From Bugula neritina (Eukaryota > Animalia > Bryozoa): DNA of 64,000 nucleotides. Below the pieces are notes generated by a model that had not been told where the DNA came from, did no database searches, and saw nothing but the letters and a program-made list of their open reading frames with translations. Shown piece by piece: positions 2,345 to 64,000 of the stretch. Both the position numbers and the translations under genes were made by a program. Every line of letters starts with the position of its first letter. Positions within the stretch are counted from its first letter, which is position 1. The DNA is taken from contig OZ037765.1 of NCBI GenBank assembly GCA_964035545.1, positions 30,255,504 to 30,319,503 of the forward strand. Direction: 5' to 3'.

Positions 2345-2830
2345 GCCTCTGGCAATTCTGAATTCATCATGATCATTATGATTATGTTCATCATGTTGAT
2401 GTTCAGATGCTGGTTCATAAATAATTATATTAGTTGCTGATATTAGTTTTAAATTTTATTATAATTTAGCATTAAGCATTATTAACATCAACAATGTTTT
2501 GAATTTGAGCAGAGTAAAATTTAAATTTAATAAACATAATGTTAATAATGTTTTAGTAATACTAATAGTTGATAAAATAATAATTAAATTAATTATAACA
2601 GTCATAATTATAATAATAATATTCTTATTGATATTTTTAAACTTAAAGTTAATATAAATATTAATAATTTTATGAAAAATAACTTTAAATATAAAATTTA
2701 AGTTGAATATAAACTATTTAAATTATTATTAAGAATTAAGGTAATGACTGAAAGTGAAACGTTTTAAAACGAGAATAATAAATCAAAATGCATAATAAAA
2801 TTTTAAGCTTGCAATTGCTGATAGTGATAA
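2345..2830. repeat. Degenerate period-3/6 low-complexity tract (ATCATG/ATTATG/ATAATT-like)
   Basis: Visible cryptic trinucleotide/hexanucleotide periodicity. Confidence 0.6.
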
Positions 2831-3126
2831 TTTTAAAGTAAAGACTTATAGCATTAATTTTGCTATCAAACTACTTCTGTTTGAAGTATAGTATTTTTGC
2901 ACACTAAAGAAGTGTTATTTACCAATATACAGCTGGTATAAACTTACTATAAATAATAACAGCAAAATTTCATATTTATTGGTATAATATACCAGACCTT
3001 CACATTTATTTTTTTAAAAATGATTGTGTTGTTTGTTTAAAATTTGTTGGAATAATTTTCAAAACTTGTTTTTGGAATTCCAGTCAACATTCTAATCAAA
3101 CTTACTCTGTTTTTAGACCCTGAAAA

Positions 3127-6100
3127 ATGGAAAGGCCAATCAATGACGACTCTGTACAGGCTAGTAAATTGGAAGGATTTAATTTCTGGAAAGAAACACT
3201 AAAAGAAGCCCGGTTAGTAAAACACAGAACTACACACATTTGGCGATTATTTACACATACCATGAGCACTATGTGTACAGTGATAACTAGACATGAGCTT
3301 CTGCACTCAGCATAGTGCTCTTTTCTATTACTCTATTTATACAGTATATTCATTCATATAGCTGAACAGTTTCTTATGTGTTTTCATATAATATTTTACT
3401 GATTTCATCTACTGTGAAAGGCTTTATTAAAGCAAAACTTTGTATTCATTGCATCTGTTTTTACTTCAACTTTGTCTCAGCATTAGTTATCTTGTGTTAT
3501 ATCTCTGTATTACACTGCATTTCCATGAAAGCGAATGAATGTATGGATGGGTTAATTGTGGTTTGTGGTTTGCATTAACTTATAATTAGCCGAATTAACA
3601 AATCATAATGCGATAATGGAAACGATAATGGAAACGTAGTGATGGTTATGCTGTGGTTTAATTCTCCGTATTAGTTATTTAGTGCGATGCTGTTATTGCA
3701 GCCATGTTGTGGCACCCATGGTAGACCAGAGTGAGCTGGCGTGGCGCATGCTGTCAAGGAATCACAATGCTCACCTGTGTTACACTCCAATGCTGCACTC
3801 GAGTGTCTTTGTCAGAGATGCTTCGTACAGACAGGAGAACCTGCAGACCTGTGAACAGGACCGACCTCTCATTGTTCAGGTTATTAGCTTACAGATGGCT
3901 CTACGTTACTGGTTCCACTCTCGCATATTTGTTTGACGATGTAACCAAAGCTAACTCCTTCCTATAAAACTTATTAATATATTGTTTTTGCAAAAAAAAA
4001 ACTCTATTAAACTTTTTATTAATATTTTTTCAACTCTCTTTTTCATAATTTAAATTGTTTTTAAAAGAGCAAATTCTTGTTGGAGTTGTGCATAATTTGA
4101 TTTTTTTGCGGTTATAATGCTGGAGAGTTGTGAGTTAGACTTAGATCTTAGAAAGTAGTAGGCTGGCTTGGTTCAGCTCTCATCTGATCTAGTAGCTCAG
4201 TAACTCCTGGGCTACCTGTTGGTCTCAGTGTCACGGTTGTGATCACACAATAGTATAGTTCGTAGGTCATCACGTTGCAAGTATTCCTAACTTTGAATCT
4301 ACTTGCTGCAATACTTGTGTCATTCTATGTAAACATGTTCGAGGTTATGCTGTGATACTTACAGTTCTGTGGTAACAAAGTGGACACCTTTGTAAAGGCC
4401 GGTCTCTTAGCCCAGCACATGTGCGATGCTATTGACATTAACTTGGGATGCCCCCAGTCTATAGCTAAACGAGGCCGTTACGGGGCTTTTCTACAAGACG
4501 AGTGGAAACTGTTGAAGGAGATTGGTAAGTAGGCCAAGAGCATTCGTTTACTGTTTTCTAGTTACTGAACTGCTTTCTGTTGGTCAAGTTTTGCTTGGTG
4601 AAACTACTTTTTGTAGAATATCAATTATGTGAATTAAAAGCTAAATGAATAAAAAATGTCTTACTCTTGGTATTTTAATATTATTCAACAAATTAGCGGT
4701 AACCAGCTTACTGTTTATATTAAGTAATGCAGTATATGTTGTGGGAGCAGCCGTAGTCTAGGGGGTTAGACTTGTGGATTAGTAAACATGAAGTCATGGG
4801 TTCGCGCCCCGTAAAGGCCATTGGTGATGTTAGGAAGAGCATCCAGTCATAATTGCTCCTGTGCCTCATTTGAATACTTTCTTAGCTCACTTTAAAAAAA
4901 AACTTTTCAATCTGGGGTTCTCACAGGGATGGTGACTATCAACTTGTGTGAGTTTATGTTGTGAAAACCAAGTTGTTGGTCTGTGATATGATTAGTTATT
5001 AAATGAGACTTATTGTCAGAGACATGTAACTTCCTGTTTAGTGTCAGAGTGTCACAAAACGTGGAGTGTACCCATCACTGCTAAGATACGAATCTTCCCT
5101 TCAGTGGAGAAGACGGTGGAGTATGCTAAGATGCTGGAGGAGGCTGGTGCCCAGCTACTGACTGTACACGGTAGAACCAGAGACCAGAAGGGGCCACTCA
5201 CAGGTCTAGCTTCCTGGTTACACATCAGAAAAGTGAGGTGAGTCACTACTATGGCTTTATTCTGCATATTATTCCTGCTACATGCTATACCTGCTACAGA
5301 TTATACCTGCTACAGATTATACCCGCTACATATGTTATCTTGTGCAGCTATACGGTTAGATAATTCAATACTCGATGTTACAGGGAAGCAGTGAAGATTC
5401 CGGTATTTGCTAATGGCAACATTCAGTACCTCAGTGACGTGACTCAGTGTATGGAGGAAACCGGCGTCCAGGGGGTTATGATTGCAGGTAAGTGTTGTCT
5501 ACTTTCTTTGTTCAATGAGCGGGGAAACAATTTCTTATTAAATACATTTCATGAGGAGTTGTCCTCTATTTTTGGTTTAACTATTAAAGTCACATTAAGT
5601 TGACCTTTGTTAATTAATCTGATGTTTTGGGATATAAAGAACTTTACTATGTTTATGAAATCATATTGATCTCTAAACACTGTACTATATAGACAATATA
5701 TGACTGTCCTCTTTTCCAATATAAATAACTTTAGTTTTTACCACAATTTGTATAAACAGAAGGGAGTCTTCACAATCCCGCCCTGTTTGATGGGGTGAAC
5801 CCACCTGTCTGGGAGATGGTGGAAGAGTATTTACAACTGGTGAGCCAGTATCCTTGCAGTCTCACTTATATCCGTGGGCACATCTTCAAGATGTGCATAC
5901 ATTCGTGAGTGTTGAACCCGTACTTGTGTATTACACTTTGTATAAATATAGATCCGGACAAAGTGGGTAAAAGTCATATAGAACATACATGTATAAAATT
6001 TTAGTTGCCTGAAACAAGTTTGCGGTGCAAATAAAGTTGAACGACACTTTCTTACCTAAAGTTTGTAGAGTATGTATCTTATTTAACTTGAACACTGTTA

Positions 6101-8402
6101 CCTGTTGTTGTATGTCACTGCCTGTTTGTTCATTACAACACTCGTGAGATTGGTTGAGAAAGACTTATAAAAAATCATTCTAAAATAAAAATTTGATGAA
6201 ATTTTTCGTTAAGCTCCATTTATTTATGATGTGTTTTTACAAAAAATCTGGCAAATGTTTTGCTTTCAGGTTTACTTTTAGGTTTTTTATTTTCAATATA
6301 TGTATCTGATGGTGTTTACGTACTAGTTATATATTGTTGCCTTGTGTACTATGTTTACAGGTTTGATGTTTACAACGATTGGAGAATCAGACTAGGGGAA
6401 TGCAAGTCACTAAATGCTGTCACACAGGTGATGAGTGAATTTATAGAGATGTTGAAGAAAGATGAGAGAAAGTACCAGGAAACACCTGAAGCATTCAACT
6501 TTAGTAAACTAAAGTTTCCATATTGGATTTGTCAGCCATATGTTAGACCAGAGTGAGTGTGTCAGAAAACTCAAGTTGTTGATTATTAGGATGAGAACAA
6601 TATTCTACACTATAGTATACAGGAAAACATTAATACCCTATTACACTGCCTCTATAGTATTGCCTCATTATAACTTATTGGTTAATACCCGTTTACAGTT
6701 AACATTTTAGCCTTGAATAGCTTTTGACAATATTTTGAATTAAGTTTAAGTTTGCAGCTAGATATTATTTTACATGTGTTTTATGCATTATAAGTACTAA
6801 TATTATGCATGGAAAATTAAGTATTCAGTTAAGACACGCTAAGATTGGGGTTTAGTTAGTTATACTTGAGTGAAACTGAGATGATAGTTATGTAATTACT
6901 AAATGTATACAGGTTCAAAGATATCTAGACTAACTTAATGTATAATGTGGGTTATTCTACAGGGTATACTGTACTCATGTTATTACTCTTTGTTTCATAT
7001 GACATGCATCATCTACTCTTATTATTATTGATACCATCTCTCTTGTGATTTATGGAGTACTTATCAGGCCTGTTTACTTGAATAAATTGTGTCTCAAGCA
7101 GTTGTCAAATGAAATCAATTTTATAAGAGTGCTGTTCCTTTATTTGCATGCGACAAGAGAGTTTTTCACATTTGATACGTTGTATGAAGTACCCAGTCAA
7201 TTTATTTGTAAATTATTACTAAATTTCTAATTTTAGCATTATGCTAGTGTGTGACAATATGCAAATAGTTTATTTTTGTTTTTAGCCACTCCCTTATACC
7301 TGAATATTTTAAAATGTCATTGTACTTTGTTATTAGGTTGTAATTTAGTTTATGCAACTTTTAGCCCGAGTACCAAGACAGACAAACCGAGTGAGGCAAA
7401 GCGGCAGAGGATGTTGTGTGATGAGTCACTACCCGAACACCTGCAGGGCCTCTCTAAAAAGAAGCTTAGAAAAGCTCTGCAGAAACCCAACAAATCTCTT
7501 GGCAACATCCACAATCCTGGCAGAGGCAAATTTGAAATGTGTGCCGAGTGCAAAACAAATGCCAGAGTGAGTGCTAGGAACAGACCCCATTTTATCCCCA
7601 ATACTCTATACTCTATAGTCTATATATAGTATACGGCTCATGCAATGTGTCTGAACATATCAGTTTTTTGGTAAAATTGATAAAGTAAAAAAATGTTGCT
7701 GGTGTTGGAAAAGTAATTAATAAACTCATTTTTGTTAAAATTATTTTTGTTAAACTACACCAGTTACTACCCAGCTTCGTATATATTCTAATTTTGTGAT
7801 ATTCTTGTGTTGAAGGGTCAGAAATGTGAGAAACTATTATGTAAAGTGTGCTGTCGAAAAATGGCCAGACAGAATTCTATCAACTGTTCAGGTATTTCCT
7901 CTTGACCAATCAGCTTGCAGCTTATTTCATGGAGATGTGTGACTTGAAGATATTTTGTACTTACTATATTTCATATCTAATCTGTATAGAAATTACCAAA
8001 ATATTTTCAAGCTATTAAGAAGCTCTCTAATACTAATTTTTTTTCATCAAACACTGTACACGTGTATCTGACGGCATGCAACAATAAAAATTCAAAATCT
8101 CAATATTCATTAAATACATGCGAGATTTTTAGTTATAACAATCTTAAAGATATATGCATGTGTTATTTGTTCATGGTTTTATATGCAACGCAGAATGAAT
8201 GTGCATATCTTAACATGCTGTATACACTGACGTTATAACAAATATCTATGCAGCATATGTCATCCTTCACAACAGTGTTATGTAATATTTCACACCAGGT
8301 CACAACCTATATTACAAGAACAGTCTGCCAAGACAAGAAAGAGAAGCTCTGCTCATTAAACAAGCCACTTTAGAACAGCAGTGTGATGTAATTCCTCCAT
8401 GA
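3127..8402 (+). CDS. DUS1L: tRNA-dihydrouridine(16/17) synthase 1-like, 10 exons, ~480 aa
   Basis: Exons 3127-3212, 3702-3879, 4365-4524, 5042-5237, 5384-5487, 5760-5904, 6361-6552, 7365-7566, 7816-7891, 8299-8402 splice in frame with GT-AG. Motifs: [72 protein letters not shown] and a C-terminal Cys-rich region. Confidence 0.95.
4743..4957 (+). mobile_element. tRNA-derived SINE, family A, near full length
   Basis: Head with A box TAGTCTAGGGG and B box GGTTCGCGCCC. Body TTGGTGATGTTAGGAAGAGCATCCAGTCATAATTGCTCCTGTGCCTCAT is shared with copies at 11681, 29163(-) and 59144(-). Confidence 0.85.
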
Positions 8403-15490: not shown

Positions 15491-17643
15491 ATGGGCAATC
15501 ATGTTTCGTCAAACTTCTGTTCCACTTGTTGCATAATTGTGATGGTGGTGTGCTGTGCAATCACTTTAACCTTGCAAAGTAGCTCTGGTAGCATTTCATT
15601 CCCTTACCTAATGGCTAATCTTCACAGGTGTAAAGCAGGTATAAATTATAAACAACTTCATTTTATATAAAGATGAAGTCTTACAGTTTATATTTTATAT
15701 ATAGATGTGAGACCTGTAAAGTTCTAGGCTCTAGAAAATAGAAAGTCTTTGCTTTTACTTACTTATAACTCTAGATCTAGAGTTATAAATAAAAGCAAAC
15801 AATTCGCCTAACACAGAGGCTCACATGCTCTGGACTAGATCTATTTTATGATGAACTTTTATATGAGACTTCAGAGTAGGTCTAAACACCTCATTTCCTA
15901 CTAAATTTGTTTGTAAATCTTTTAAACGTCTAGTATAAAATCAATTTAAAAACCAAACATAATTTACGACTTTAGAGTCTCCTGATGTCATCATTTGGGT
16001 GCAAGGTAGAGCAACTTCTACTCAACTAAGATCTATGATCAGGGATACTTACGGAAACCAAAAGAATTGGCCTCACAATGTGACTGTAACACTTATATTC
16101 TTCACTGGAAAGCTAAGTGGGAAAGATGCAAAGCATCAAGTCACTTTAGAATATGAGTTTGACCACTATGGGGACATAGTACAGAGTGATTTTCCAGGTA
16201 AAATGTGTGTAATATTATACTACATGTGAAATCATTAGATTTCAACGCAAATCGGTATGGAAAGAAAACTCCATAATTTTTAAAAGATAAAAAAACTTTA
16301 GTTTTATTACAGGAGTTGTCAAGCTGAACTATTGAGAGCAATACTGCCGCATATGTGTAACCACTGGGCTGTAAGATAATGCTGTAAATAATTGCCAGCG
16401 CTCTGTTAGTGGCAAATTTTCAATAACACAATAATTATAGAGAAGACAAGTCATAATAACCTGCAAATTGATCTTATATCCCCAGCTAATAGAATGTACA
16501 AGTCTGTACAATTCTTTAAGTATTTGATGCAAACATATTAATATTACATTAACATCCTGTTTTTAAATGACATATGACCTACTTGGTTTGAAAATAGTTC
16601 AGTTAATGGGAGGTAGCCATGATTTAGTAGTTAAAAGGCTGGCCTATAGTGTGCACTAGCTCACAGGTTTGAACCCCGGCAGGTGGTGTCAAAAACAACT
16701 TCCTATAAAATTATATTTGTTTAAGTGCTGCAGGATACGCAGTCTGCCGAATTAAAAAAGCCGTATACCATTCCACAGAGATGGCAATTTAAACAAACTT
16801 GAGTTTCTATGCTATTGGATGTATCAGGCAGATTGATAGAAATTTTTTTGCCCATTTTATTTAAAATTAAACGTTTAGGACGGTTCGCTGATCCAATTGT
16901 TTATATGCATTAACTTATACCCCAGCAGATGGTTAAGGTATTGTAAAGTTTGGTCACAACAAGATTCCCATTATGTTGTAGAAAATTACAAAAACCAAGT
17001 TAGTAAAATGGTGAGTGCAATAAATTACATCACAGATTACTGCAACCAATCAAAACTCATCCTCAGGATTGATGATGATGTCATATTCCATCCCCGGCTA
17101 ATGTTTGACACTCTCATAGATGTCTTCCTAAATAGCAGTGAGTCTAGTCGCCAGCATCTCCACCGGTCATCTGATCTCAAAATATTTCAGTTGCCTCGAA
17201 ACACCATAGCCTGTCATCTAATTAGTGACTTTGAAGTTTGGAGAAAAAAAGACCACCCCAAACATTTCAATGCGGTTGATGATACTGTACTGCCCGGTGA
17301 GGTTTGGTATCCACCATTTTGTGCGGGATTCTTTGTAGCCATGTCTGGAGATGTACCAGGAAACCTCAGATCTCATATAGCAACGAATAAGCCATTCTGG
17401 ATGGATGACAGATATATGGGGGTGCTGCAGAAAAGAGCTTCTACTAGTAACATTAATATTAGTCCTATTTTAGATTTTGGTTACAAATCAATTACATCAG
17501 AGGTATTGGACTTATTAGCAAATCGTAAAAAAATTGTCAGACATTTACCTGGAAAACATAAATTTCACATTTCACAATTATACGGATACTTAGATTTGTC
17601 AATTCAGGGACTAAAAGGACATTTTGAGACTATCAAGTATTGA
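15491..17643 (+). CDS. GT31 family beta-1,3-galactosyl/GlcNAc-transferase-like, copy A, 3 coding exons, ~343 aa
   Basis: Exons 15491-15638, 15976-16197, 16982-17643 splice in frame. N-terminal hydrophobic anchor, RSMIRDTYG, YGDIVQ.DF.ENY, DxD motif in LILRIDDDVIF, YPPFCAGF, WMDDRYMG. Confidence 0.85.
15763..15788. repeat. Perfect 26-bp palindrome TTATAACTCTAGATCTAGAGTTATAA in intron 1 of GT31 copy A
   Basis: Direct reading; imperfect arms (GCTTTTA/TAAAAGC) extend further. Confidence 0.9.
16608..16808 (+). mobile_element. Highly degenerate tRNA-SINE related to family A
   Basis: GGGAGGTAGCCATGATTTAGTAGTTA...GGTTTGAACCCC head and a tail-like CACAGAGATGG...AAACTTGAGTTT. Confidence 0.45.
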
Positions 17644-22505: not shown

Positions 22506-24339
22506 ATGAAATTAATGCAGAGATGGACGATAGCAACTGTGATAGTTATAATATTAGTTACCTTCATGATCAAGTTACTCAGACAAAATTCACAACATGG
22601 AAAGAAAACAAAGACTCAATCAACAGCTTTTGAATATCAAAAATTTTACCCTTACATTATGGCTGATTTTGAAAGATGTGAAAGAGGTGGGTCAACATCA
22701 CAGATACCTCATATCTTTTCATCCCTTGTAATATTACACTGTATTAACTGCTGCATAGAAAATATGTGCATAAATTGTGAGTTGTCTTTTCACACATGTT
22801 TTACACAGTCATTGTTTTTGTAAATTGTTATATTATTTTATATCTGTTGAATCTTTAGTTGAAAAAAGAAATTTGTTTTTGTTAAGTGTTGGTTGCCTTT
22901 TATATTTAACAGGTTTTATAATATGTATATGTTTGTGTGTGCATGCATGCTTGTGTGTTAATCGAGGCTTGAGTTTTTAGATATTTTGCTTGCAACTGTA
23001 ACCAAATCATAGCTTTACATGTCTACTTTTTTCTCTAACTGCTAAAGACAGACTGGTAAATGTTTTAGAGTCTCCTGATATCATCATTTGGGTGCAAGGT
23101 AGAGCAACTTCTAATCAACTTAGGTCTATGATCAGAGATACTTACGGAAACCAAAAGAATTGGCCTCACAATGTGACTGTAACACTTATATTCTTCATCG
23201 GAGAATTACCTAAGAACAAGATTCAATACCAGAATATGTTACAGTATGAGTTTGGACTCTATAAAGACATTGTACAGAATAATTACAGCGGTATGTGTCT
23301 CGAAGCACCTTGTACTCAGCCATTTAATTGCATTTTTCTTAACATATTTTTAAAAAAGTATGTTTAAATGAACATAAATGTAGATTTTATCTTCAAAATT
23401 ATTATCCTTTAGGATGAAATGACTACAAAAAACACACATAGCTATTAGCTGCTTCCTTGAGCATAAACCTCAGGTAATCAATTCTGTTTTCACTCACAAT
23501 CACAGGTAGAAGAAATGAGTGAGCACCTGGTGAATTGTATGAGTTGTCCTCACATTATCATTTTTATGACTAATTTCTCAAGCACCGAAATATCTTTCAT
23601 TTTGTGGGACAGGCGATGTTTTTTATATTTTATATGCTGTTGAGTGTTGAGCTAACCAGTTTACCGTTATATTGTAGAAAGTTACAAAAACCAAGTTAGT
23701 AAAATGGTGAGTGCAATAAATTACATCACAGATTACTGCAACCAATCAAAACTAATCCTCAGGATTGATGATGATGTCATATTCCATCCCCGGCTAATGT
23801 TTGACGCTCTCATAGATGTCTTCCTAAATAGCAGTGAGTCTAGTCGCCAGCATCTTCACCGGTCATCTGATCTCAAAATATTTCAGTTGCCTCGAAACAC
23901 CATAGCCTGCCATCTAATTAGTGACTTTGAAGTTTGGAGAAAAAAAGACCACCCCAAACATTTCAATGCGGTTGATGATACTGTACTGCCCGGTGAGGTT
24001 TGGTATCCACCATTTTGTGCGGGATTCTTTGTAGCTATGTCTGGAGACGTACCAGGAAACCTCAGATCTCATATAGCAACGAATAAACCATTCTGGATGG
24101 ATGACAGATATATGGGGGTGCTGCAGAAAAGAGCTTCTACTAGTAACATTAATATTAGTCCTATTTTAGATTTTGGTTACAAATCAATTACATCAGAAGT
24201 GTTGGACTTATTAGTAAGGTGTGAAAAAATTGTCAGACATTTACCTGGAAAACAGAAGTTCCACATTTCACAATTATACGGATACTTAGATTTATCAATT
24301 CGGGGACTAAAAGGACATTTTGAGACTATCAAGTATTGA
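22506..24339 (+). CDS. GT31 family glycosyltransferase, copy B, 3 coding exons, ~354 aa
   Basis: Exons 22506-22686, 23069-23290, 23678-24339 splice in frame. Type II anchor WTIATVIVIILVTFMI. The catalytic exon is ~97% identical to copy A. Confidence 0.87.
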
Positions 24340-25487: not shown

Positions 25488-28400
25488 CTAGGATAAAACA
25501 ATCAATTGACTGCAGGGCTGAGGCTGCTTGGTCTTGAGATATACATTGAGATCAACTCCTAGTTCACTCAACTGCTTCATGTAATCCTGCTCCATGGCAT
25601 CCTTTTTCGATTGTATGTCTACAATAATAGGGCTAATTGAGCACCAACAAATCTACCCCCCCCCCCTCGATGTCAAATACAGACTCGTAGATTACAACCA
25701 AGTTGATGAGAACACGACATATTTTGCACTTGGAGTTGTTTTGGAAAGTGTCCTAACAAACTTGTAAATTACTAATACCTCTATTTTTAAAAAAAATTTA
25801 ATAGGAAAAAATCTAATTTACTGGAGTGAAAACTTCTTAATAAGTCTATTACCATGATGCCAAATGGAGACACGCAACACAGCACAACCAAATTGAAGAG
25901 AACATGACATTTGTACTTCTGGTTGTTTAAGAGGTCTCTTAACAAACTCATTCTTACACCAACTTTTACTTGAGGCTTTTTTATAAGCAAAGTCTGATTT
26001 AATATGATACAGAAGTTGAAATATTACTTGTACTGCATACATACTATAGGCTATGAAAGAAGGCAATATATCTACCTGTTTGAGCCTCCTGTTTCATATT
26101 GTCTATGATTAACGACTGGGCATGTTCTGCATTTGCAATGTGAGCTTCGTGCTGACTCCTGAGTAAGGTTAACTGTTGATTGTGCTGCTCCTTCATGTCA
26201 TCAATTTCATTTTCTGTCAATATGAAGTAAATTAATATTTAATATATTATTACGTAAAATACTTAAAGTGTGTTTAAAGCCACCACCATCTTTGTGAAAA
26301 AAATCCTGATGATTGGAACTTTTTAAGATCGAGCTAAGGACTTGTTTCTAATGTTTCACAGAAGCAGTTATGACCGAATGCCTTTCTTAACATCAATGCT
26401 GGTGTTTGGACTCGAACCACTGGCCTCGTGTTTTACTATGTACATAATACTAATACAGTAAAAGATAAGTTTGCATTACCGTATAAATAATATTGGTAAA
26501 CTATAAGGAAAAGCAATTCAATTATTAAAGAAAATAAGACCTTTTATTGTATTTTTGCTGATATATCAGTATAAAAAAACATTTCCAATTTACTAAACAT
26601 TGGAACATAAAGTAAAGCATCTCTGATCCATGTTACAAAGCTATCACTTACTTTCTTCCACCCTGTTCTGTTGTTTGGAGAGTTGGAAATCTTTCTTCTT
26701 CTGCTGCATGGCTTGAACTTCATGCTGTAACCGCATGTTGGTTCTATTCTCAATGTTTTTATCATGCATGGCCTGCCATTAATAAAAAGGAATTCAACAA
26801 TATCAGAGATGTGGAGATAACTGCGACATGATGAGGAACAGTAGACAAGTGCCGAGTATCAAATGAACAGACAACTTCTGTTAAACTACTCTATCATGTG
26901 GAAATAGTACTGTAACAAACTGACAACAATTGTTTTTAGTAAGTAAAATCCAATACTGCACGCGAACTGTATATCATTTGCTCATCCAGCATATTTCTAC
27001 CTGTTACTTGGGAGTCGTCATATATTTAAAAGTAAAGTTTTCTATTTCACGACATTTTGTAATCATTTCCTGCAACATTAATACTTGTGATCGGAAACAA
27101 AGAGTCTTGATTTAACAACAAAAATCTATTATATCGCGTCAAGTTTACATACCATTTTGAGAATTTAGGTGTAGCAAATAACAGTATTACAGTTGAGCAC
27201 AAATTTGTTTTAAAAAGTCACTAGTCTCAAATATTCATGGAATAAAAGCCTATGTGCCTTGTTATAGCAATATTTAAGGGTGCAACTTAGCCATATTAAT
27301 ACAGCATATAATTTATGTGCAAAAGGTTTAACTACAATTGCAGAAACTAATGCATTCTTACACACACTAGTAATTTATCTAAGAGTATGGACAGAAAACA
27401 TTTATTGCAGGGAGTTGTGTCCTCGAAGCGGGTCATACCTGTAGTTTGATAGAAACAGTGTAGCCTCTATAAACTACTTTGTTAAGTCTGTACCCAATCT
27501 TCTCACAGATCTGTAGCAGTTGAGGAAATGTTTCAGTGTCATTCAATTTGTTAGATCCAGCAACAAACCCTTGGAACCTGCAGAAAATATTTTTTTCTAC
27601 AGATTACAGTTTACTAGTAGTAAAACTCACCCTGAACGTCTGCTTGTTATCTGCTTTAATATAAATCTATTATAAGACCTATACTTGCAAGCTTTACAAT
27701 TCAGGCCTGTAGTTTACGAGTTATAAATGCAACAGAATAATCTACCCAATTAAATGTTTACAATGTTGATAGATAATAAGTCACCAGCTAAATATGGTAT
27801 GTGATTACAACGCTAGAAAGCTCATGTAACTTACGTGAGTCTTCCAGCAAACTGAATAACGTCAGCACACATGGCACTACAATGAAATCCATCAAAACTT
27901 TAAAAACATGTTTTGCACACCTGTCCTGCAAATAGGTGTTTCAAGAGTTTAAATTATTAAAAAATTACGAATACTAAAATATTATGCTGAGAAAACATAT
28001 AAAACAATGACACTTCATACTGCAGGTATACCTTACAATTCATGCACACCTTTGACACTCTTTACAACTTTAGAAATAAAACCACCAAACATTGCATTGG
28101 AAAATTCTACCTGCAGTCACCCTTAATGCAACCAGAGAGCTACAGTGAGTTCAAGTTACACCCGACAACTAAAATTTTAATCTACTAGGTTTGCCTAATG
28201 CCATGGAGATACTCAGCTGCATAATAAAAGTAGTTTAAGTATTGGTCAGTGGAAGAAGTTTAAGTATTGGCGAGTGGAAGTAGTTTAAGTATTGGCGAGT
28301 GGAAGTAGTTTGAGTATTGGTGAGTGGAAGAAGTTTAAGTATTGGTAAGTGGAAGTAGTTTAAGTATTGGTGAGTGGAAGTAGTTTAAGTATTGGTAAGT

Positions 28401-30869
28401 GGAAGTAGTTTAAGTATTGGTAAGTGAAAGTAGTTTAAGTATTGGTAAGTGGAAGTAGTTTAAGTATTGGTAAGTGGAAGTAGTTTAAGTATTGGTAAGT
28501 GAAAGTAGTTTAAGTATTGGTGAGTGGAAGTAGTTTAAGTATTGGTGAGTGGAAGTAGTTTAAGTATTGGTGAGTGGAAGTAGTTTAAGTATTGGTGAGT
28601 GGAAGTAGTTTAAGTATTGGTGAGTGGAGGTAGTTTAAGTATTGGTGAGTGGAAGTCGAAAACTCGTTTCAAATTACACGAAGTTACTCACTTCATCATA
28701 TCTGCTATAGGGTCAGATGTTTCTTCCAGCTACAATATAAGAACAATTATATAATTATAAAATATAATAAACTGACACTGAAATAGCACCTGCTACACAC
28801 TAGTTATCTATAGTCATCAATGGATGCAGTTATTTTTAAATTCCCTACAACAATCTCCAATTGGCTCTACTAAAAAATTGTTCCCATTTTCAATCATGAA
28901 AACACAAACAAGCGAGCATGTATTGATTGTTTCACTTACTAACTTTTTACAGTTATTTATAATTTGCCGGTACTTACAAAAAAAAACACTCAGGCAAGTT
29001 TATAGTCGCTATCTTTGTGAGAAACTCCTGATGGAAAGGGTTTTTGCTAGAACAGGCTAAGGACTTGTTTAAATGAGGCACAGGAGCAATTATGACTGGA
29101 TGATTTTCCTAACATCCCCAATGGCCTTTGTCAGGGTTTGACCCCTAGACCACGGCTGCTCCCTTACAGATGCCTATAAATACACACACTTACTACATGA
29201 GCATACTTACTACTTACCATCTTCAGAACATCAACTAACTCATAGTAAACCATTAGCTTAACCACCATTTTCGTGTCATCCAAAGTCCGTACTTCGTTTA
29301 TTTTGTCTGAGAAATGGCCCGGCATCATTGGCAGCTGGGTGATAGTGCGCGCTGCCCGAATCATGTGATCTGACTCATTTTTATCCTGACCATGCCATTC
29401 AAACTTGTGTATCCTAAGCATAAGCACACAAAGATTAAACACAATTCATATAACACAACAATTACCTGCATTCACTGTAAATATGTAGAATCAATGGGAC
29501 ATTTTATACTCCAAAACTACTGTAGAAGATAAGAAAAATTATACATATCAATTTACAATAAATTTTTTTACATTTGGGTAATTTATTTATTACACACTTA
29601 TTGCATTTCGACTAATGATAACCTAAATTATTCATTAAAGAGCAGAAATAATAGTCCATATTATATAGAGAGTATATAGAGTAGAGTACAATGCATAGTC
29701 ACCATTCATTGGCTGCGGGTATGAAAACTGTGGGTCCCTCGACAATCCTTCTAATCACCTGATCTCCATTATTTCTGTATACAACTATCACACAATGACT
29801 GTCTATTTTTATGGCTTCTTTAACCTTCAGAGATGTTAGCTCCAGAGGGTTCAAAAACATCTCACAGGGTCTATCAAAAGTCATTATTTATATTCACTAT
29901 ACATAATTAAATTCTTGTGAAAACTCGTGAATATGATCTTTGTATAAAAAACAATTTTTAGTACTATGAGTATTTAATAATTAGCAAGTTTAACCCCACA
30001 CACGCGCACATGTAATTGAATTGAGAATATTGAGTGAAAAATGCCTGTTAGCAAAATAAAAATTTTAATACAACTGATAATAAATGACTTATAATTACCC
30101 AGGAACATGCGTTACATTTCCAACATTATCTTTCAGTTCCAGATATTCATACTGAGAGGCTGTTTTCCTTTCCAGCATCACTAAACGGTCCCGAAATATA
30201 AATACCTAAAACAATGAATACATAAATTGAAAAATATTCATACGATAAGAAGTATAACATGCTATTAGGAGGGTTTAAAACCCTACAACACCAACTTGGG
30301 TGAGCATTATAGGGTAATCTCTTACCCACTACACTACTGGCCTTTTTTATGTTAATTTGGTAGTGATTATGAGCACACTACTATGTGAAGTGGTGCAGTA
30401 AAGGTTTAAATCCCATTGTCAGCATGCCAGTTTTGTCAGTAACTTTACATAGGAAAATAACAAATATAAGACAAAATAAGTTCCCTCTGGAACACATTAT
30501 TAAATCGACTTTAAAAATTATTTAAGTTGACAAAAGAAAACGTGAAACAGACAGAGAACTTGATTCAAAAATATGTTGACTATAATGATCCCTGAATAAA
30601 ATACATGAGCATTTTTGCTTACAGCTGTGTTGTTAAAAGCACTCGATATGAACTACTATAACAGTAAAAATATATTGATCACTATAATCACAAACATTGA
30701 GTCACATAATTAACCAGATAAATGACTGTCAGATGCCACCATTTCAAAATAATCCATCAAAGTGAACTATAACCATACATACTCTTTTAGGGCCTTTGAT
30801 TAGAGTCCCTTCCCCAAGATAGTTGAACAGGACGGCCTGCTCACCTTCTCTTACAGTCTTGAATTTCAT
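25488..30869 (-). CDS. Major-vault-protein-like / SPFH-domain protein, 10 exons, 388 aa
   Basis: Exons 30869-30783, 30205-30099, 29870-29703, 29413-29218, 28729-28692, 27876-27835, 27577-27439, 26772-26652, 26213-26076, 25618-25488 total 1167 nt, are all GT-AG and are phase-consistent. Three GP-containing beta repeats, then an SPFH-like EVRTLDDTKMVVKLMVYYEL...SDPIADMMNAMCADV, then a Q/E/K-rich coiled coil. Confidence 0.85.
28229..28656. repeat. 25-bp minisatellite (GTAGTTTAAGTATTGGTGAGTGGAA), ~17 copies, intronic
   Basis: Direct tandem repeats. Confidence 0.95.
28990..29163 (-). mobile_element. tRNA-derived SINE, family A, with internal head deletion, in intron 4 of the MVP-like gene
   Basis: Reverse complement matches 4743-4957. 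Confidence 0.8.
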
Positions 30870-31169
30870 TTCCGGCACTTATGATAAAAAACATAAAAGT
30901 ATAAGATATATACCTAATAAATTTATCTAATCCAATTTTGATAATTACAAATTTATAATTTTGATCTAATTAAAAGTTATCTAATTTCTTTACAGCTGTG
31001 ATTGTAATATCATTTAGGTAGATTATTCAAACTACTACTAGTACTACTGTCACCTAGTATTTTTATATGATAGTATTTCGCATTGTATTATGATTGATAT
31101 TTCGTAGGTAAAAAAACTTTTGAAACAATCAAAATTTAATAGTAAATGAAAAATACTAAATTTTTAGAC

Positions 31170-32970: not shown

Positions 32971-40975
<8,005 letters not shown>

Positions 40976-47948: not shown

Positions 47949-50900
47949 TTAAAATGGAATTTCATTTTGATAGTATTGGATCAAGTCATAAGCCTTGGCT
48001 CTCCAGTTTTTACAGCAGTCTATAACAATTCGGTCCATGTGTTGAGCAGCCTCTTTCTCACTCGCCTGAGGCAAGAATCTTTGTCTCAAAAGTTTGATAG
48101 TGTTACCACGGAAACAAGGAAACCCAGTGTCTAACATGAGTGACACTAGAGAGACAATAGCCTCACGATACGGCCTGCAGGTAGATTACAAGTAGTTTAA
48201 ATAAACTACGCAAATAAACAGCACAAAAAAAAAGAGAAAACAACTCTTGATTAGAACATGAAATCTTTAAAGATAATGTATTAATCGTGTTAAATGTGTA
48301 AACATTATACAAAGATTCGACTATATAAAGTGAAAATGGAAGTAGGAAATGAAACTAGTGTCAGCTAAATAACACCAAATATGAATTTTGTGAGTTTCTA
48401 AACAAAATAATAAAATCTTCTTTTTAAAATCTGAGAATCACAAGACAAATTTTTACAGAACAAGTTTATAAATAAAACTGATACTGTAACAATAATCTCT
48501 AAAACCTTTGAAAATAAAATAGAGACTCCAAGAGAGTTGCATATTGGTTCTGTTCCAACACCTCAAATACTGCGACAATCAACCAACTGCATACAAACAC
48601 AGACAGTGACAATAAGGAAAGCTTACCTGCAAGCCAGGTACGCCTGAACACAGAGCTCTCTGAACCACTGGAATGGCGGAGCATCCACACGCCCTGCAAT
48701 GATAAACACAAAGCACTTTAAGCACATGCTATATACAGCACCTGACAGATATATTTCAACTGATTATACTACTCTATAAAAAAGTGATTAATAAGAGTCG
48801 TCTGCCCTATATGAGAACTGGTAACTTATAATATTATATTGTGTAATAATACAGTAATGATGTAACAGCTGAGCCATGCTAAACCTCACCTCCCATTATA
48901 AGTACCATCTCATCAGTCAGCTTGAAATCTGGCTCAAAGCCAAGATTTCCACCGGGACTGCTCTCAAACAGGAAGCCAAAATCTGAAATTATTTGAAACA
49001 TAGTATATGCAATAATATACGCTATAGTATGTATATGCTATAATATACACTATAGTATATGCTATAATATGCGCTATAGTATATAATGCTACATGCTAAA
49101 ATATACGCTCTAGTATATGCTATAATATACGCTATAGTATATATGCTACATGCTATAACAGACGCTACATGCTATAGTCTAAAAGCCGCAGAACTTGAGT
49201 GGTAGTGGTGAAACAAAACAAACAATATGAAGTGATAAACTCATTTCAAGTCATAATAAAACAATGGATAATATATAAATGTAATAATACAACTACTTTC
49301 TTTGGGCAAGCACCTGGCTACACTTAGGGACAAAAACCAGGCTAAATATAAAATATAAAATGCGTGTGCGTGTGAAACATTACTCTACATTTGAACAACT
49401 GACAGTCACATTATACTAATTCGATTAAGACTGAATAACAGACTACGATCAGAACAACACATGCACATGTACAGCTGATAAATAACCACACCCACCTATA
49501 TGTATCAAGTGACCTTTGCTGTCCAACATGATGTTACCATTGTGTCTGTCTTTAATCTGTAAGAGGTAAGTGATGACGCTGTAAGCTGCCATACTTACTA
49601 TGAAGTTCCGTCGCACCTGAAATAGATGTACAGTTGTAATACATATAAATATAATAGATGTACAGTTGTAATACATATAAATATAATATATGTACAACTC
49701 TATCACCTCATTAAATTGTAGCTCAGTAATAGTTATTATGAGAGCAGCAACTATGTAGTATAATACCAGTAATATACTGTAATACTAACTAGTAATATAC
49801 TGTAATACCAACTAGTAATATACTGTAATACTAACCAGTAATATACTGTAATACTAACTAGTAATATACTGTAATACTAACTAGTAATATACTGTAATAC
49901 TAACTAGTAATATACTATAATACTAACTAGTAATATACTGTAATACTAACTAGTAATATACTGTAATACTAACCAGTAATATACTGTAATACTAACCAGT
50001 AATATACTGTAATACTAACTAGTAATATACTGTAATACTAACTAGTAATATACTGTAATACCAACTAGCAATATACTGTAATACTAAATAGTAATATACT
50101 GTAATACTAACTAGTAATATACCGTAATACTAAATAGTGATATACTGTAATACTAACTAGTAATATACTGTAATACTAACTAGTAATATACTGTAATACC
50201 AACTAGTCATATAGCATCAAATAGATGAGCCACTCACTGCTTGAAACTCTGTTGACATCTCGTCTCCATAATTATGCCGGAAGTATTCATACATTCCAAT
50301 GTCTGTTTGTCTGCCAATCTGGTCACGTGACTTAGTATCCGGAACACACTCGATCACTCCACTCTGCAAACCCGCAAACCATCTATTATTATTATGCTAT
50401 TACCTTATATGATGGTAATATCACCATATATTATGGTAATACAATCTTATATTATGGCAATACTAGATACCAATTGACTTCTATACACTCCAATGGACCT
50501 AGCATTTACCTCTTTTCCAAACATTTCACAAGGTAATGCATACTTAAGACTAAGACTTGAGAACTATGTTAATACAAGACGTACCCCAGGTGCTGTGGCC
50601 ACCACCCGATACGGGGCTAAGTACACCTCCAGGTCAGCCAGTTTGAACACGTGTTGGAACAGTTCCATGATTTGTAAGGCCAGCATATCCTGAAGTGGAA
50701 GTCAATGCGTATTCATCTCATGCAAGTTCATATCAACATAACAAAAACTAAACACACAGTATAAATAGAAAGGGGCGAATAACAATGGTGTACTCTAGTC
50801 TGGTAATCATCATCACTCTTCATTATTTCATGTCAATACAGTATAATGTGAGCAACAATTTTCACTTAGTATAACTTAAAGTGCTCTATTTTAAATTCAA

Positions 50901-53900
50901 GTCTGTAATACTGGAATGTACCTACGTGAAACAGCAGCTTGCTAGGCTACTACAAACATTTAAATATATCCCCAGTGTAACAACACTGAAGGAAAACTTC
51001 ATTATGTAGTTTTGCAAGTTTAGGGTTTTAATAAGTGCTTCCATAAAAACAGGGAAAGCATTCTGATTCGACGTTATTCTTGATATCTTAAAATTAGACA
51101 GCTTATTTACAGATCAAATTTTTAAATTGTAAATTTCTTTAGTTAAAAACAATATTAGGAATACAGCGTTTCATTTACATTTTATACTGTATGGAATATG
51201 TGGAATACCAAAGCCGTATTCCATATAACCAACACATTTACCAAGTCAGTTTAGGTTTTATATAATATACTGAAAGACACAACACTACATACACCCACCT
51301 GTCTCACATCATCTCCTACTTTAAAAATACAGCCTTGGTATATCTGTTTACTTTCATCAGTAAAGTCGGGCACCTCCGATACAGCCCCCAACCTTTCCAG
51401 TGCAGTTAGACCAACCTTCTCCACTTTAAACCGGGCAAAATACGGAGCCTTTGCAGCACTAGAATTGAATGTATTAAATTATTTGTAGCAGCAATTATTC
51501 AATATAGAAAAACAATGAGATTCATTGAAAAACTACCACCTTGTATCACGAACCTTGCTAAACATGCATGGCAAGTTGTTTTGTTTAAATTAACCACGCA
51601 AGTTAAAGAAATACATTCACCCCAGTCTAAAGTACACATGTACTAAAGACAGTAAGTAAAGGTGTAGTGTACGTACCTTTGCATAGGAGCTCCGGATTTG
51701 TAGTCAATCTCAAGGACAACTGATTCAGGGTTTGATGGTAGATAACAACCTAAAAAATAGTATATACATTATACACTACATGTATATACAGTACACACTA
51801 CATGCATATACAGTATACACTACATGCATATACAGTACACACCACATGTATACACAGTACACATTACCTGGTGTCACGTCTATTTTACTCAGCTCCTTGA
51901 GGCAAGCATTCTTTCTCTCCGGACCTTTAGGGAAGACCCTGATAGTCCCCGACACGTTTGTTATCTTAGCAAAGAACTCAAACTCTCTCTCGTAGAACAT
52001 ACGTGCAGAGCCACTCAGCTGTGAGATGATAGTGTCTATCAGCCCTTCCAGCTTCCTCCCAATATCCTCTGTAATATAATCCCATGATTTCTAAACCTTT
52101 GTAATACAAGCATGATGTAGTTCTTGTAATGTTAACATTCAATGTAATGTAAGTTCACTACAATATTCTTCCTAGTAATATAACCACAAATTCCCTGTAA
52201 TTGAAGCCTTTTAATTGCGTGTAATATATGCATATACTGTTCATTGCTACATAAGCATATATTATTCTTTGTAATATAAGCACGTGATGTAACAAATATG
52301 TTTAACATCATTTATGATGTAATTGAAAAACTTCATAATTATTTTTCGCATACCAAATGAAGAAGATTCCATCAATCAGTGAACTGAACTCAGTCTGGTA
52401 TGAAGTATATAGCAGGTGTACACTAACAGTATCAAACTTACCATCTAGTATTTCAGCATTTTCATCTTTATACATGTTGGTCTTCATATTCCAGATTAGC
52501 TGATGAGTGAGAAGTTGTGATCTCTTGGATGTGTTGATGATAAACTCACTAACATACCCCATCTGGTGGAAACAATGTAATACATTCAACTATAATATTT
52601 AACTACCTTACACACACATGTATAGAATATGTAGTACATGTGATATAGCAAAGTTCTTTATACACAGAAAAGAATGCATGACAACTTGTCTAATTCTTTG
52701 AGCCTTTAGTCTATATTAAAAGGCACCCTGAGTGACTAAATACTAAATATGTAAATAGTTGTAGAATAAATGCACTATAAAAATACGATATAATGCAATT
52801 ATATTTTACACACGAACAGGAAACAAGTAACCATGGTAACACACGATAGCCATGGTAACACACGGTAGTCATGGTAACACACGGTAGTCATGGTAACACA
52901 CAGTAGCCATGGTAACACATACAGTATCATATCTCAGAGCTTGCACAATCTGGGGTATGTAGAAGAGGAGGACATCAGGAGGGTAAGAGTTGAGCACACG
53001 AAGAGCATACTGCGCTGTGATTGGATGAGGGGGGTACTGTCTGGAGAAGTAGGAGAGGGCGACTACAGGTGGCACTCGGCTCCAGTTCAATATGTGGGAC
53101 AGCTAAAACCAACAATATTATATTACATAAACAAGAAGCATTCAAACCATTTGCTAAAAATGTGCCTTGTAATACTACACAATGTAAAGTAAAATGTTTG
53201 TAATGACTACAACGAATTCTATTCAAATAAATTCTTAAGAATAATCAATGCTCATGGCCAGTCTTGTGACAGTGTGCCGTGTGGTAGCGTGTCAGATGTA
53301 AGAGAGCTATGTGTAGAGCAAGAGGTGAAAATGTCACACTTTGCATATCTGCTGTTGCTAGGGATTGTATGTGCTCAGACTAAACATGTGTTTAGCCTCA
53401 CAGCTGAAGAAAAGGCCAAGTTTGCTGCAGATGTCAAGGTAAAAGTACACGATATTTGACAAACATTTATTAGTGGCTTAGTAACATTTTCAACTGGTTT
53501 CTATCATACGATTGTTTTACAGCTGGTAGAGAATGGTGATGTGTACGAGTTCTTTTCCTCGGGATACCCTGACCATGCGATAGACAACAGTGTCAACCCT
53601 TCTACAGCTTCTGTTCAAAATTTCACTTTCAACTTCACCATCTCCCCAGACAATGATGGTAACAGCATAGAATGCTCATAACACCTCAATATAAATGTTT
53701 CTTGCATATTTCAAACTTATGTGTAGCACAGCATCAGCTGTCCAGCCAAACACTTGTCAATGAACAAACTTTCTCAGTTGTTGAGAGTTCATTTTAATCA
53801 CTCTTGTATTGTGAATGTCTAGTAACAAATTCAATGCTTCCGTCTTTCTGTCTGCTTGACCAGAAGGTTTATTCTTGCAGGAGATGAAGTGTATTGTACG

Positions 53901-63809: not shown

Positions 63810-64000
63810 CTAAAAATATTTTAGACTTTGAAATAATGTTCAAGAAGGTTAAAAGTTTTCCAACACTGTTTATAAATTAAACATTATATAAATAATGCTT
63901 ATTTATTATTATTTACCAATGACCCTAGAATATTTATGTGTTTGGTTAGTTACTCTGATAGTTCCACTAAACAGTAGCAAAGAGCAAAAGGTGGCAGTGG

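Follow-up and report, generated by a model that had tools for sequence, protein, structure and literature searches.

A miniature relative of the major vault protein in Bugula neritina and its proposed cage-like assembly

Structure of the gene

The window, a stretch of 64,000 nucleotides of the Bugula neritina genome (contig OZ037765.1), carries on its reverse strand a gene of 10 exons and 388 codons, which, judged by its sequence features, is confirmed as real. The nine introns are all GT-AG with matching phases, the joined exons (1167 nt) read as 388 codons and a stop with no internal stops, and the GC content is 0.38-0.48 in exons versus 0.25-0.35 in introns. Searches were performed with individual exons, and folding was carried out on the co-linear Lineus orthologue P0132 (390 aa) as a proxy for the Bugula protein. 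P0132 aligns position for position with exons 1-8 and weakly with exons 9-10, and the best matches of the gene are spiralian. Exons 1-7 are also present on L101, a contig from a related animal in metagenomic data, with identical junctions and phases and 72-92% identity. Over these 255 codons the two copies differ at 47, 29 and 155 first, second and third codon positions, respectively, which indicates purifying selection on the gene.

Exon 1, 30783..30869, minus strand: aa 1-29, start Met and the larger part of repeat 1; 83% identity to P0132 1-29, 79% to L101; repeat HMM 25 bits
Exon 2, 30099..30205, minus strand: aa 30-65, remainder of repeat 1 and beginning of repeat 2; matched by orthologue, L101 and repeat HMM
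Exon 3, 29703..29870, minus strand: aa 65-121, remainder of repeat 2, followed by repeat 3 (SPFH1-equivalent); matched by orthologue, L101 and repeat HMM
Exon 4, 29218..29413, minus strand: aa 121-186, hairpin of the keyhole loop and first part of the shoulder (SPFH2); its search gave 96 family matches
Keyhole loop and pocket segment, 29302..29409, minus strand: aa 123-158, within exon 4
Exon 5, 28692..28729, minus strand: 38 nt, aa 187-199, shoulder helix with DPIAD motif; 92% to L101
Exon 6, 27835..27876, minus strand: 42 nt, aa 199-213, shoulder helix; 85% to L101
Exon 7, 27439..27577, minus strand: aa 213-259, shoulder end, last strand and start of the long helix; matched by orthologue, model and L101
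Exon 8, 26652..26772, minus strand: aa 260-300, cap helix; 56% to P0132
Exon 9, 26076..26213, minus strand: aa 300-346, cap helix; weak match to P0132 (about 29%)
Exon 10, 25488..25618, minus strand: aa 346-388 and stop, end of cap helix, VDL..YL motif and one terminal strand; 43% to P0132
Possible splice acceptor, 30878..30895, minus strand: putative non-coding 5' UTR intron, 8 nt upstream of the ATG

In L101 the equivalent acceptor lies 1 nt before the ATG, that is, in a different frame. The sequence-only reading had described 10 exons, 388 aa, three GP repeats and no transmembrane segment, and all of this held: the intron borders and phases agree, the junctions of exons 1-7 recur in the second genome, the repeats are borne out by the predicted structure and by a repeat HMM, and no transmembrane stretch is present, the maximum 19-residue hydropathy within exons being 0.85. 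Pfam searches with single exons of the gene gave chance-level matches only.

Predicted fold and comparison with MVP and SPFH cages

The model of P0132, which is about 49% identical to the Bugula protein over the matched exon segments, contains three MVP-type repeats, a shoulder with a keyhole-loop insert (hairpin at 125-145) and a single cap helix of 109 residues (256-364, about 30 turns). Its pTM is only 0.61, so that the domain orientation is uncertain. In Foldseek the top 12 matches were all MVP (E 1e-15 to 5e-11), followed by erlin (2e-7), and comparison with rat MVP 321-779 gave a VIA Z of 15.9 over 368 residues; the model superposes on MVP repeats 7-9, shoulder and cap helix. Stomatin, prohibitin and erlin reached Z 11-13, with alignments starting at about model residue 84. 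The repeats alone matched mouse MVP R1-R7 with Z 10.4 (rmsd 2.4 over 122 of 123 residues), the next non-MVP structure having Z 4.2, and in Foldseek their top 16 rows were MVP, but every E was above 0.001. The N-terminal repeats of the model thus adopt the MVP repeat fold, and it is MVP, not flotillin or stomatin, that ranks as the best structural match.

In profile comparisons the exon 4 region matched the keyhole/shoulder exon of the Bugula genome's own MVP (probability 87%, E 4e-6), and no significance was obtained for the repeat exon and the helix exon of this MVP; the repeat HMM gave only 4-7 bits on MVP exons. No MVP or SPFH chain was found when the family profiles A1, A3 and A4 were compared with PDB sequences, and Pfam MVP_shoulder and Vault gave no match above cut-off for the window exons or at the locus. 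Across members of the family described below, Band_7 was the sole commonly matched Pfam family (68/117), Vault_3 was matched weakly in 10/117 (best E 2.8e-4) and MVP_shoulder was not reached. Based on the orthologue model, the architecture is very probably that of three MVP/SPFH1-type repeats, a keyhole shoulder, a cap helix of roughly 30 turns and a C-terminal strand. The MVP-type repeats, MVP-type shoulder and short cap helix read from the sequence are therefore upheld by the predicted structure and by the profile alignment to the genome's MVP, and an evolutionary intermediate between SPFH cages and vaults is plausible.

Canonical MVP forms a 78-mer barrel that holds PARP4, TEP1 and vault RNA. 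MVP (rat 4V60/6BP7, human 9BW5/9R86; PF01505, PF17795, PF11978) has the same order of parts, from tandem repeats over a shoulder with keyhole loop to a long helix and a terminal strand, it is the best structural match of the orthologue model both as a whole and for the repeats alone, and neither protein has a membrane anchor. However, MVP has nine repeats in about 850-890 aa compared to three in the 388 aa of the Bugula protein, and its cap helix of 42 turns (PMC3595041) compares with 109 residues, about 30 turns, in the model. Identity to MVP is 14-18%, the pocket residues differ, no Pfam MVP match lies above cut-off, and the family is distinguished by two animal paralogues and a bacterial operon context. 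With the SPFH/Band 7 cages (flotillin-1/2, erlin-1/2, prohibitin-1/2, stomatin, HflK/C) the family has SPFH1, SPFH2, the coiled coil and the C-terminal strand in common, paired paralogues occur in both, and its Band_7 match is weak. Unlike these cages, it has no transmembrane or hairpin anchor and, in the orthologue model, no N-terminal helix, and it carries two extra N-terminal repeats and, between SPFH1 and SPFH2, a keyhole insert some 25 residues long.

Family range, keyhole loop and bacterial operons

The family is unnamed, comprises at least 762 clusters and extends to protists and bacteria, mainly PVC; its members have 3, 5, 7 or more repeats. Two ancient paralogues, A (the window gene) and B, are mostly kept in sponges, spiralians, crinoids and hemichordates. 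Clades A and B of the tree each hold sponges and bilaterians, both paralogues occur together in more than 30 named species, and the Bugula genome carries B on C2. An HxH tail is present in all 23 of 23 B proteins, in 3 of 30 A proteins and in 48 of 69 from bacteria, and exon 10 of the window gene does not encode the second strand with HxH seen in paralogue B. The neighbouring Atlas clusters that carry MVP_shoulder are separate from the family. No named vertebrate match to the family was found, though vertebrates have vaults, and no relatives were found in viral contigs or phage records, the viral structure matches being ordinary Band 7 proteins. The gene thus encodes paralogue A in this ancient family of MVP relatives of miniature size.

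In the keyhole loop of the window copy (aa 123-158) H-F-WHG-D is kept and the family-conserved K135, R137, P140, F145, D153, Q154, Y156 and Y157 are replaced. The close relatives P0001 and P0002 have the same altered states, and paralogue B keeps the near-invariant residues that the window copy replaced. In human MVP, NAD+, ADP and ADP-ribose occupy a site between two subunits, behind the keyhole loop (PMC12280208; bioRxiv 10.64898/2026.05.01.722283). The human pocket residues R504, K506, R507, P508, R511, D521, F522, W545, P565 and K573 were compared by sequence profile, not by coordinates. By this mapping P508, D521, an aromatic residue at W545 and the basic character of the loop are retained in the family, but some of the Arg/Lys residues are not: R504 aligns with Asp and R511 with a mostly hydrophobic position. 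In the window copy the equivalents of P508 and D521 are lost.

NAD-salvage/ADP-ribose genes (nrtR, pncA, pncB, nadE, Nudix, ARH, PARG, Tpt1) were found in 53 of 80 bacterial family loci as co-directional operons, with 310 of 311 such genes co-directional and such an enzyme directly downstream of the family gene in 38 loci. The link spans at least seven named phyla, and the order of the genes varies among them; since the operon may have been passed between lineages as a whole, the loci do not count as independent. A PnuC transporter occurs in a few operons, and almost all partners are soluble enzymes. A well-supported clade of Myxococcota and Gemmataceae has N-terminal extensions and is without the operon, and MshEN was found in the extension of the single member scanned. 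A promoter scan of one bacterial operon gave chance level, and no NAD gene was found among the neighbours of the animal gene. The literature searched mentions neither the family nor its link to the operon; a mention may exist in subscription papers or in the 2016 RNA-repair review of Burroughs and Aravind, which reportedly discusses Band-7 proteins.

The same gene set (nrtR, pncA, pncB, nadE, ARH/ARG, Macro, NADAR, phosphatase) is known from NrtR regulons and ARG-centred counter-ADP-ribosylation loci (PMC2330246; PMC9503650 section 3.8), and a word search of both sources gave no Band 7, vault or MVP-like member. The sequence-only reading was made without knowledge of the wide range of the family, bacteria included, of paralogue B, of the bacterial operon context or of the altered keyhole loop. 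Short MVP-like proteins as such are already known. According to the accessible parts of the reports, these include Naegleria proteins of 530-559 aa (PMC3595041), which unlike the family carry an MVP-shoulder annotation, an Asgard MVP with five repeats modelled as a 10-mer cup (PMC12962969), archaeal one-repeat forms of 317-396 aa (PMC13607799) and bacterial MVP homologues (bioRxiv 10.1101/872010). As far as described there, they have the same compact repeat-shoulder-tail plan and smaller predicted assemblies, but are protist or prokaryotic, and those parts contain no three-repeat WHG-motif family of roughly 400 aa, no animal A/B pair beside canonical MVP and no NAD/ADP-ribose operons.

Proposed assembly, alternatives and significance

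We propose that copies of the gene product probably line up laterally to form a soluble ring or cup, with the helices and terminal strands closing it, in effect a short-walled vault. In animals, A may assemble with B as in flotillin-1/2 or HflK/C, with B supplying the second cap strand; the chances appear about even. The ancestral family would rather likely have bound ADP-ribose/NAD+-type nucleotides in an inter-subunit pocket behind the keyhole loop, and scaffolded or buffered NAD+-recycling and de-ADP-ribosylating enzymes. In the Bugula lineage, subunit A with its rebuilt loop would be mainly structural or take another ligand, and it is somewhat unlikely that the window copy binds as the rest of the family does. 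Overall, we infer with moderate confidence that the protein is subunit A in a small vault-like cage that is soluble, probably built from A and B, and belongs to a family with a nucleotide pocket. The widest reading, in which a second miniature vault, A/B in animals and with a pocket for ADP-ribose/NAD+, is common to invertebrates, protists and PVC bacteria and belongs in bacteria to an ADP-ribose-induced (NrtR) operon for NAD recycling and de-ADP-ribosylation, is offered tentatively, as a possibility we lean slightly against.

It is barely credible that the gene is canonical MVP in truncated, wrongly modelled or decaying form. A total of 48 homologues share the start Met of the gene, with MKF at residue 1, so it cannot be an MVP cut short; a search upstream gave no Vault repeat, and nothing there points to further coding exons that would extend it to full-length MVP. 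Truncated MVP, pseudogene and upstream coding exon are ruled out by these starts, by bacterial homologues of the same length, by a full canonical MVP elsewhere in the genome and by the purifying selection. A TROVE-domain gene is also present in the Bugula genome; DUF4062 (TEP1 NADase) was not found there, which does not establish its absence. With canonical MVP and the TROVE-domain gene at hand, and a model that superposes on MVP repeats 7-9, shoulder and cap helix, the product might instead serve canonical vaults as a minor subunit or adaptor, built into them or capping them, and form no particle of its own. This is very improbable, as identity to MVP is only 14-18%, the helix is shorter by about 12 turns and no named vertebrate match was found; MVP_shoulder was also not found in five family-bearing bacterial genomes, a weak point as the control gave none either.

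A flotillin-like peripheral membrane cage, in which SPFH1-SPFH2-coiled-coil and two extra SPFH1 repeats would corral membrane proteins and the NAD link would be incidental or serve a transporter, is unlikely. It would fit Band_7 as the sole commonly matched Pfam family, the alignment of erlin, flotillin, stomatin and prohibitin from residue about 84 (Z 11-12), the homology of MVP repeats to SPFH1 (PMC12915596), the paralogue pairs typical of membrane SPFH cages and the few PnuC genes, but the product has no hydrophobic anchor, the keyhole insert is present as in MVP and skipped by the stomatin alignments, the repeats are far nearer to MVP than to SPFH1 (Z 10.4 versus 4.2), and the operon partners are almost all soluble. 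The rewritten loop under purifying selection, the pTM of 0.61 with its uncertain domain orientation and the short wall given by three repeats would also be consistent with a small NAD/ADP-ribose-binding oligomer or filament, not a cage, whose animal copy drifted to an unrelated structural role. As the close structural relatives in the Foldseek list all form rings or cages, and the cap helix and terminal strand motifs are retained, this is quite improbable.

The function of vaults has been an open question for 40 years, and the NAD-consuming PARP4 and TEP1 sit inside them. To our knowledge, no independent genetic evidence had tied the vault shell itself to NAD chemistry before. In recent structures the MVP shoulder holds NAD+/ADP-ribose (PMC12280208; bioRxiv 10.64898/2026.05.01.722283), and the bacterial members of this half-size MVP-related family belong, in several phyla, to NAD-salvage operons responsive to ADP-ribose. 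The conserved A/B pair in many invertebrates, beside canonical MVP in the Bugula genome, points to an overlooked second particle, and the series of repeat numbers (3, 5, 7 or more) offers a way to study wall height, ring size and smaller protein cages. Since the family is present in cultured planctomycetes and verrucomicrobia, knockout, induction, binding and cryo-EM tests are direct. If the widest reading is true, particles of the vault type would have handled nucleotides ancestrally. The bacterial operon context offers a simple test of what vaults are for.

Window gene and its genomic surroundings

The window has the base composition of AT-rich animal DNA and belongs to a 216-Mb assembly, in which the following genes were located.

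Genes in the window and elsewhere in this genome (G000; C1 is the window's contig)
Window 30869 (ATG) to 25488 (stop), minus strand: mini-MVP gene, ten exons, 388 codons plus stop
Window about 4996-7630, plus strand: Dihydrouridine synthase (Dus) family gene
Window 15963-17640 and 23002-24339, plus strand: two tandem galactosyltransferase-family genes (PF01762)
Window about 33800-39600, plus strand: PRPF6-like splicing factor gene with PRP1_N and HAT/TPR repeats
Window about 53200-55200, plus strand: YHYH-domain gene (PF14240)
G000:C1:10229500-10234700 (locus L007): full-length canonical MVP (repeats, shoulder, long cap helix)
G000:C2:26246600-26251000 (locus L020, about 2600-7010), plus strand: paralogue B gene, intron positions differing from the window gene
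G000:C7:1052794-1055972: TROVE-domain gene, TEP1 or Ro60 type

The ten-exon, 388-aa gene proposed in the sequence-only reading was recovered. All nine introns are GT-AG with consistent phases, and GC content is higher in exons than in introns. Exons 1-7 recur in L101, a metagenomic contig of a related animal, at 72-92% identity and with identical junctions, including those of the 38- and 42-nt exons; differences at codon positions 1/2/3 number 47/29/155. Exons 1-8 are colinear, residue for residue, with the 390-aa Lineus orthologue P0132. Since junctions and phases are kept in L101, 48 fetched homologues have MKF at residue 1, and a complete canonical MVP gene lies on the same contig 20 Mb distant, the gene is judged from its sequence to be intact and short by design.

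Intron 5 contains a 25-bp tandem repeat (window 28228-28656, 17 copies, 95% identity) that begins 35 nt away from the donor site of exon 5; minisatellites of this kind are numerous in the window. The near-identical galactosyltransferase-family pair represents a recent duplication, and its second gene is convergent with the mini-MVP gene, ending ~1.1 kb from the mini-MVP 3' end. The PRPF6-like gene is positioned head to head with the mini-MVP gene, separated by ~3 kb of AT-rich microsatellite-like DNA. The YHYH-domain gene apparently lies within an intron, on the opposite strand, of what is presumably a PI4-kinase-alpha-like gene (window about 47950-64000, minus strand). DUF4062 was not detected in this genome.

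Predicted fold and comparison with MVP

Searches were performed with window exons one at a time, and P0132 was folded as a stand-in for the window protein. The AlphaFold2 model, based on 117 homologues (pLDDT 89.7, pTM 0.61), predicts three small beta repeats (residues 1-122), a hairpin insert (125-145) and an SPFH2 shoulder (150-255), then one helix of 109 residues, a second, short helix and a tail. The first twelve Foldseek matches were MVP structures (1e-15 to 5e-11), and erlin, flotillin and stomatin ranked behind them (2e-7 and weaker). By VIA, 368 residues of the model matched rat MVP 321-779 (Z 15.9). The repeats modelled separately reached pLDDT 95.6 and aligned with mouse MVP repeats over 122 residues (Z 10.4, rmsd 2.4; next fold Z 4.2). 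For the modelled orthologue, these matches support the plan of three repeats, shoulder and cap helix suggested previously. Repeat 3 is assigned in the model as the SPFH1 equivalent, because ordinary SPFH proteins align with it only from residue ~84, as expected from the published finding that MVP repeats and SPFH1 are homologous (PMC12915596). The hairpin insert matched the keyhole loop in the MVP exon of this genome (prob. 87%, E 4e-6). At the sequence level the family is linked to MVP only remotely, hence the database names 'uncharacterized' and 'Band 7 domain-containing'.

Judged from the model, the window protein would work like MVP and is not a canonical member: it differs in repeat count and helix length and scores below the Pfam cut-offs of MVP. 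Compactness in itself is not new, since short MVP-like proteins are already described from Naegleria, Asgard and other archaea, and bacteria (PMC3595041, PMC12962969, PMC13607799, bioRxiv 10.1101/872010). In the openly accessible literature searched, no description of the family, the animal A/B pair or the NAD operon was found. Several ESM Atlas clusters (520-870 aa) with MVP_shoulder and Vault_3 often have tailed phages (Uroviricota) as recorded members, and these clusters are read as phage MVP-like proteins.

Animal A/B pairing and bacterial NAD/ADP-ribose operon context

Exon 4 as sole query yielded 96 representatives, and a broad profile search at least 762 clusters. Among the matches listed, named animals were sponges, molluscs, an annelid, nemerteans, crinoids, hemichordates and rotifers, and other named eukaryotes Pigoraptor, Salpingoeca, Paramoeba and Copromyxa; none of these names was that of a vertebrate, arthropod, nematode or cnidarian. 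Most members have 3 repeats, a 490-aa planctomycete form has 5, and some others 7 or more.

Two paralogues are present in most animals; both clades contain sponges and bilaterians (SH-aLRT 100 and 97), and A and B occur together in more than 30 named species. Clade A scored higher for 9 of the 10 window exons and clade B for 7/7 segments of the C2 gene, which is likely to encode the partner subunit. Two strand-like motifs form the C terminus of B and of most bacterial proteins, and the second contains HxH (23/23 B, 48/69 bacterial); A has one, with HxH in 3/30. The C2 protein has the HxH strand and an intact consensus keyhole loop.

Bacterial members were found at 161 loci, of which 80 (38-49% identity), mainly of Planctomycetota, Verrucomicrobiota and Myxococcota, were retained. 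In 53 of these, NAD-salvage or ADP-ribose-processing genes lie within 6 kb of the family gene (nrtR 49, pncA 45, Nudix 40, ADP-ribosylglycohydrolase 33, nadE 31, Tpt1/KptA 28, pncB 26, PARG 15, NADAR 7, Macro 5), these being counts of loci that share ancestry. Almost all such genes (310/311) are co-directional with the family gene, and one of these enzymes is encoded directly downstream, at -49 to +80 bp, in 38 loci. The neighbourhood was found, with shuffled gene order, in at least seven named phyla; the animal gene's neighbours are unrelated to it. Most loci lacking these genes fall in one clade whose proteins are extended at the N terminus; in the member scanned, the extension is MshEN.

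Members of ~600 aa that carry a long extension at the N terminus (L072, L084, L085, L089, L091 and related loci; Gemmataceae and other bacteria) often follow trpB without an NAD operon; the L089 extension is an MshEN domain (c-di-GMP-binding type). This may reflect a change from one nucleotide signal to another, and the MshEN-type extension explains the misannotation of snail homologues as 'T2SS protein E'. A 1704-aa ORF of Myxococcota (L069:340-5454) carries the module at its end; its 1300 N-terminal residues matched no Pfam family.

Keyhole loop and proposed assembly

The loop region is the most conserved surface segment of the family (H123, F125, W127, H128, G129, F145, L148, P152, D153, Q154, Y156), with K138 in 100% of bacteria and R149 in 96% of operon-linked bacteria. 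The window protein retains H-F-WHG-D and has S135, H137, R140, I145, G153, H154, S156, D157 and Y177, F145 being otherwise invariant in 156 sequences. Most of these states recur in two close relatives, so the change is one fixed in this lineage rather than a sign of decay. NAD+ and ADP bind human MVP at tens of micromolar in an inter-subunit pocket behind this loop (PMC12280208), where ADP-ribose is present in brain vaults (bioRxiv 10.64898/2026.05.01.722283), and ADP-ribose releases NrtR, the repressor of NAD genes (PMC2330246). Fold and operon, as two independent lines, therefore converge on the keyhole loop. Ligand binding by the family is a prediction, since the basic residues of the human pocket have no one-for-one match.

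The architecture, range, A/B pairing and operon context established for the family are best explained, with somewhat better than even confidence, by a mini-MVP cage, formed from A and B in animals, with a putative ADP-ribose/NAD+ pocket. It is unlikely that the protein forms a peripheral membrane cage; a non-cage oligomer is improbable, and a role as accessory to canonical vaults slightly more so. A truncated MVP is scarcely credible given the MKF starts and the separate canonical gene.

In the favoured mini-MVP cage, repeats and shoulders would pack laterally into a ring, the long helices would shut its cap and the terminal strands would form a barrel, giving a soluble short-walled cup or a mini-vault of two cups. 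In animals, A and B may alternate as in flotillin-1/2 or HflK/C, and the extra strand of B may make the cap less crowded (compare PMC12915596). The pocket would span two subunits, so that the rebuilt A loop would leave intact pockets at no more than every second site. The likely job of the family would be to hold ADP-ribose or NAD+ and to bring together the enzymes responsible for releasing and recycling it.
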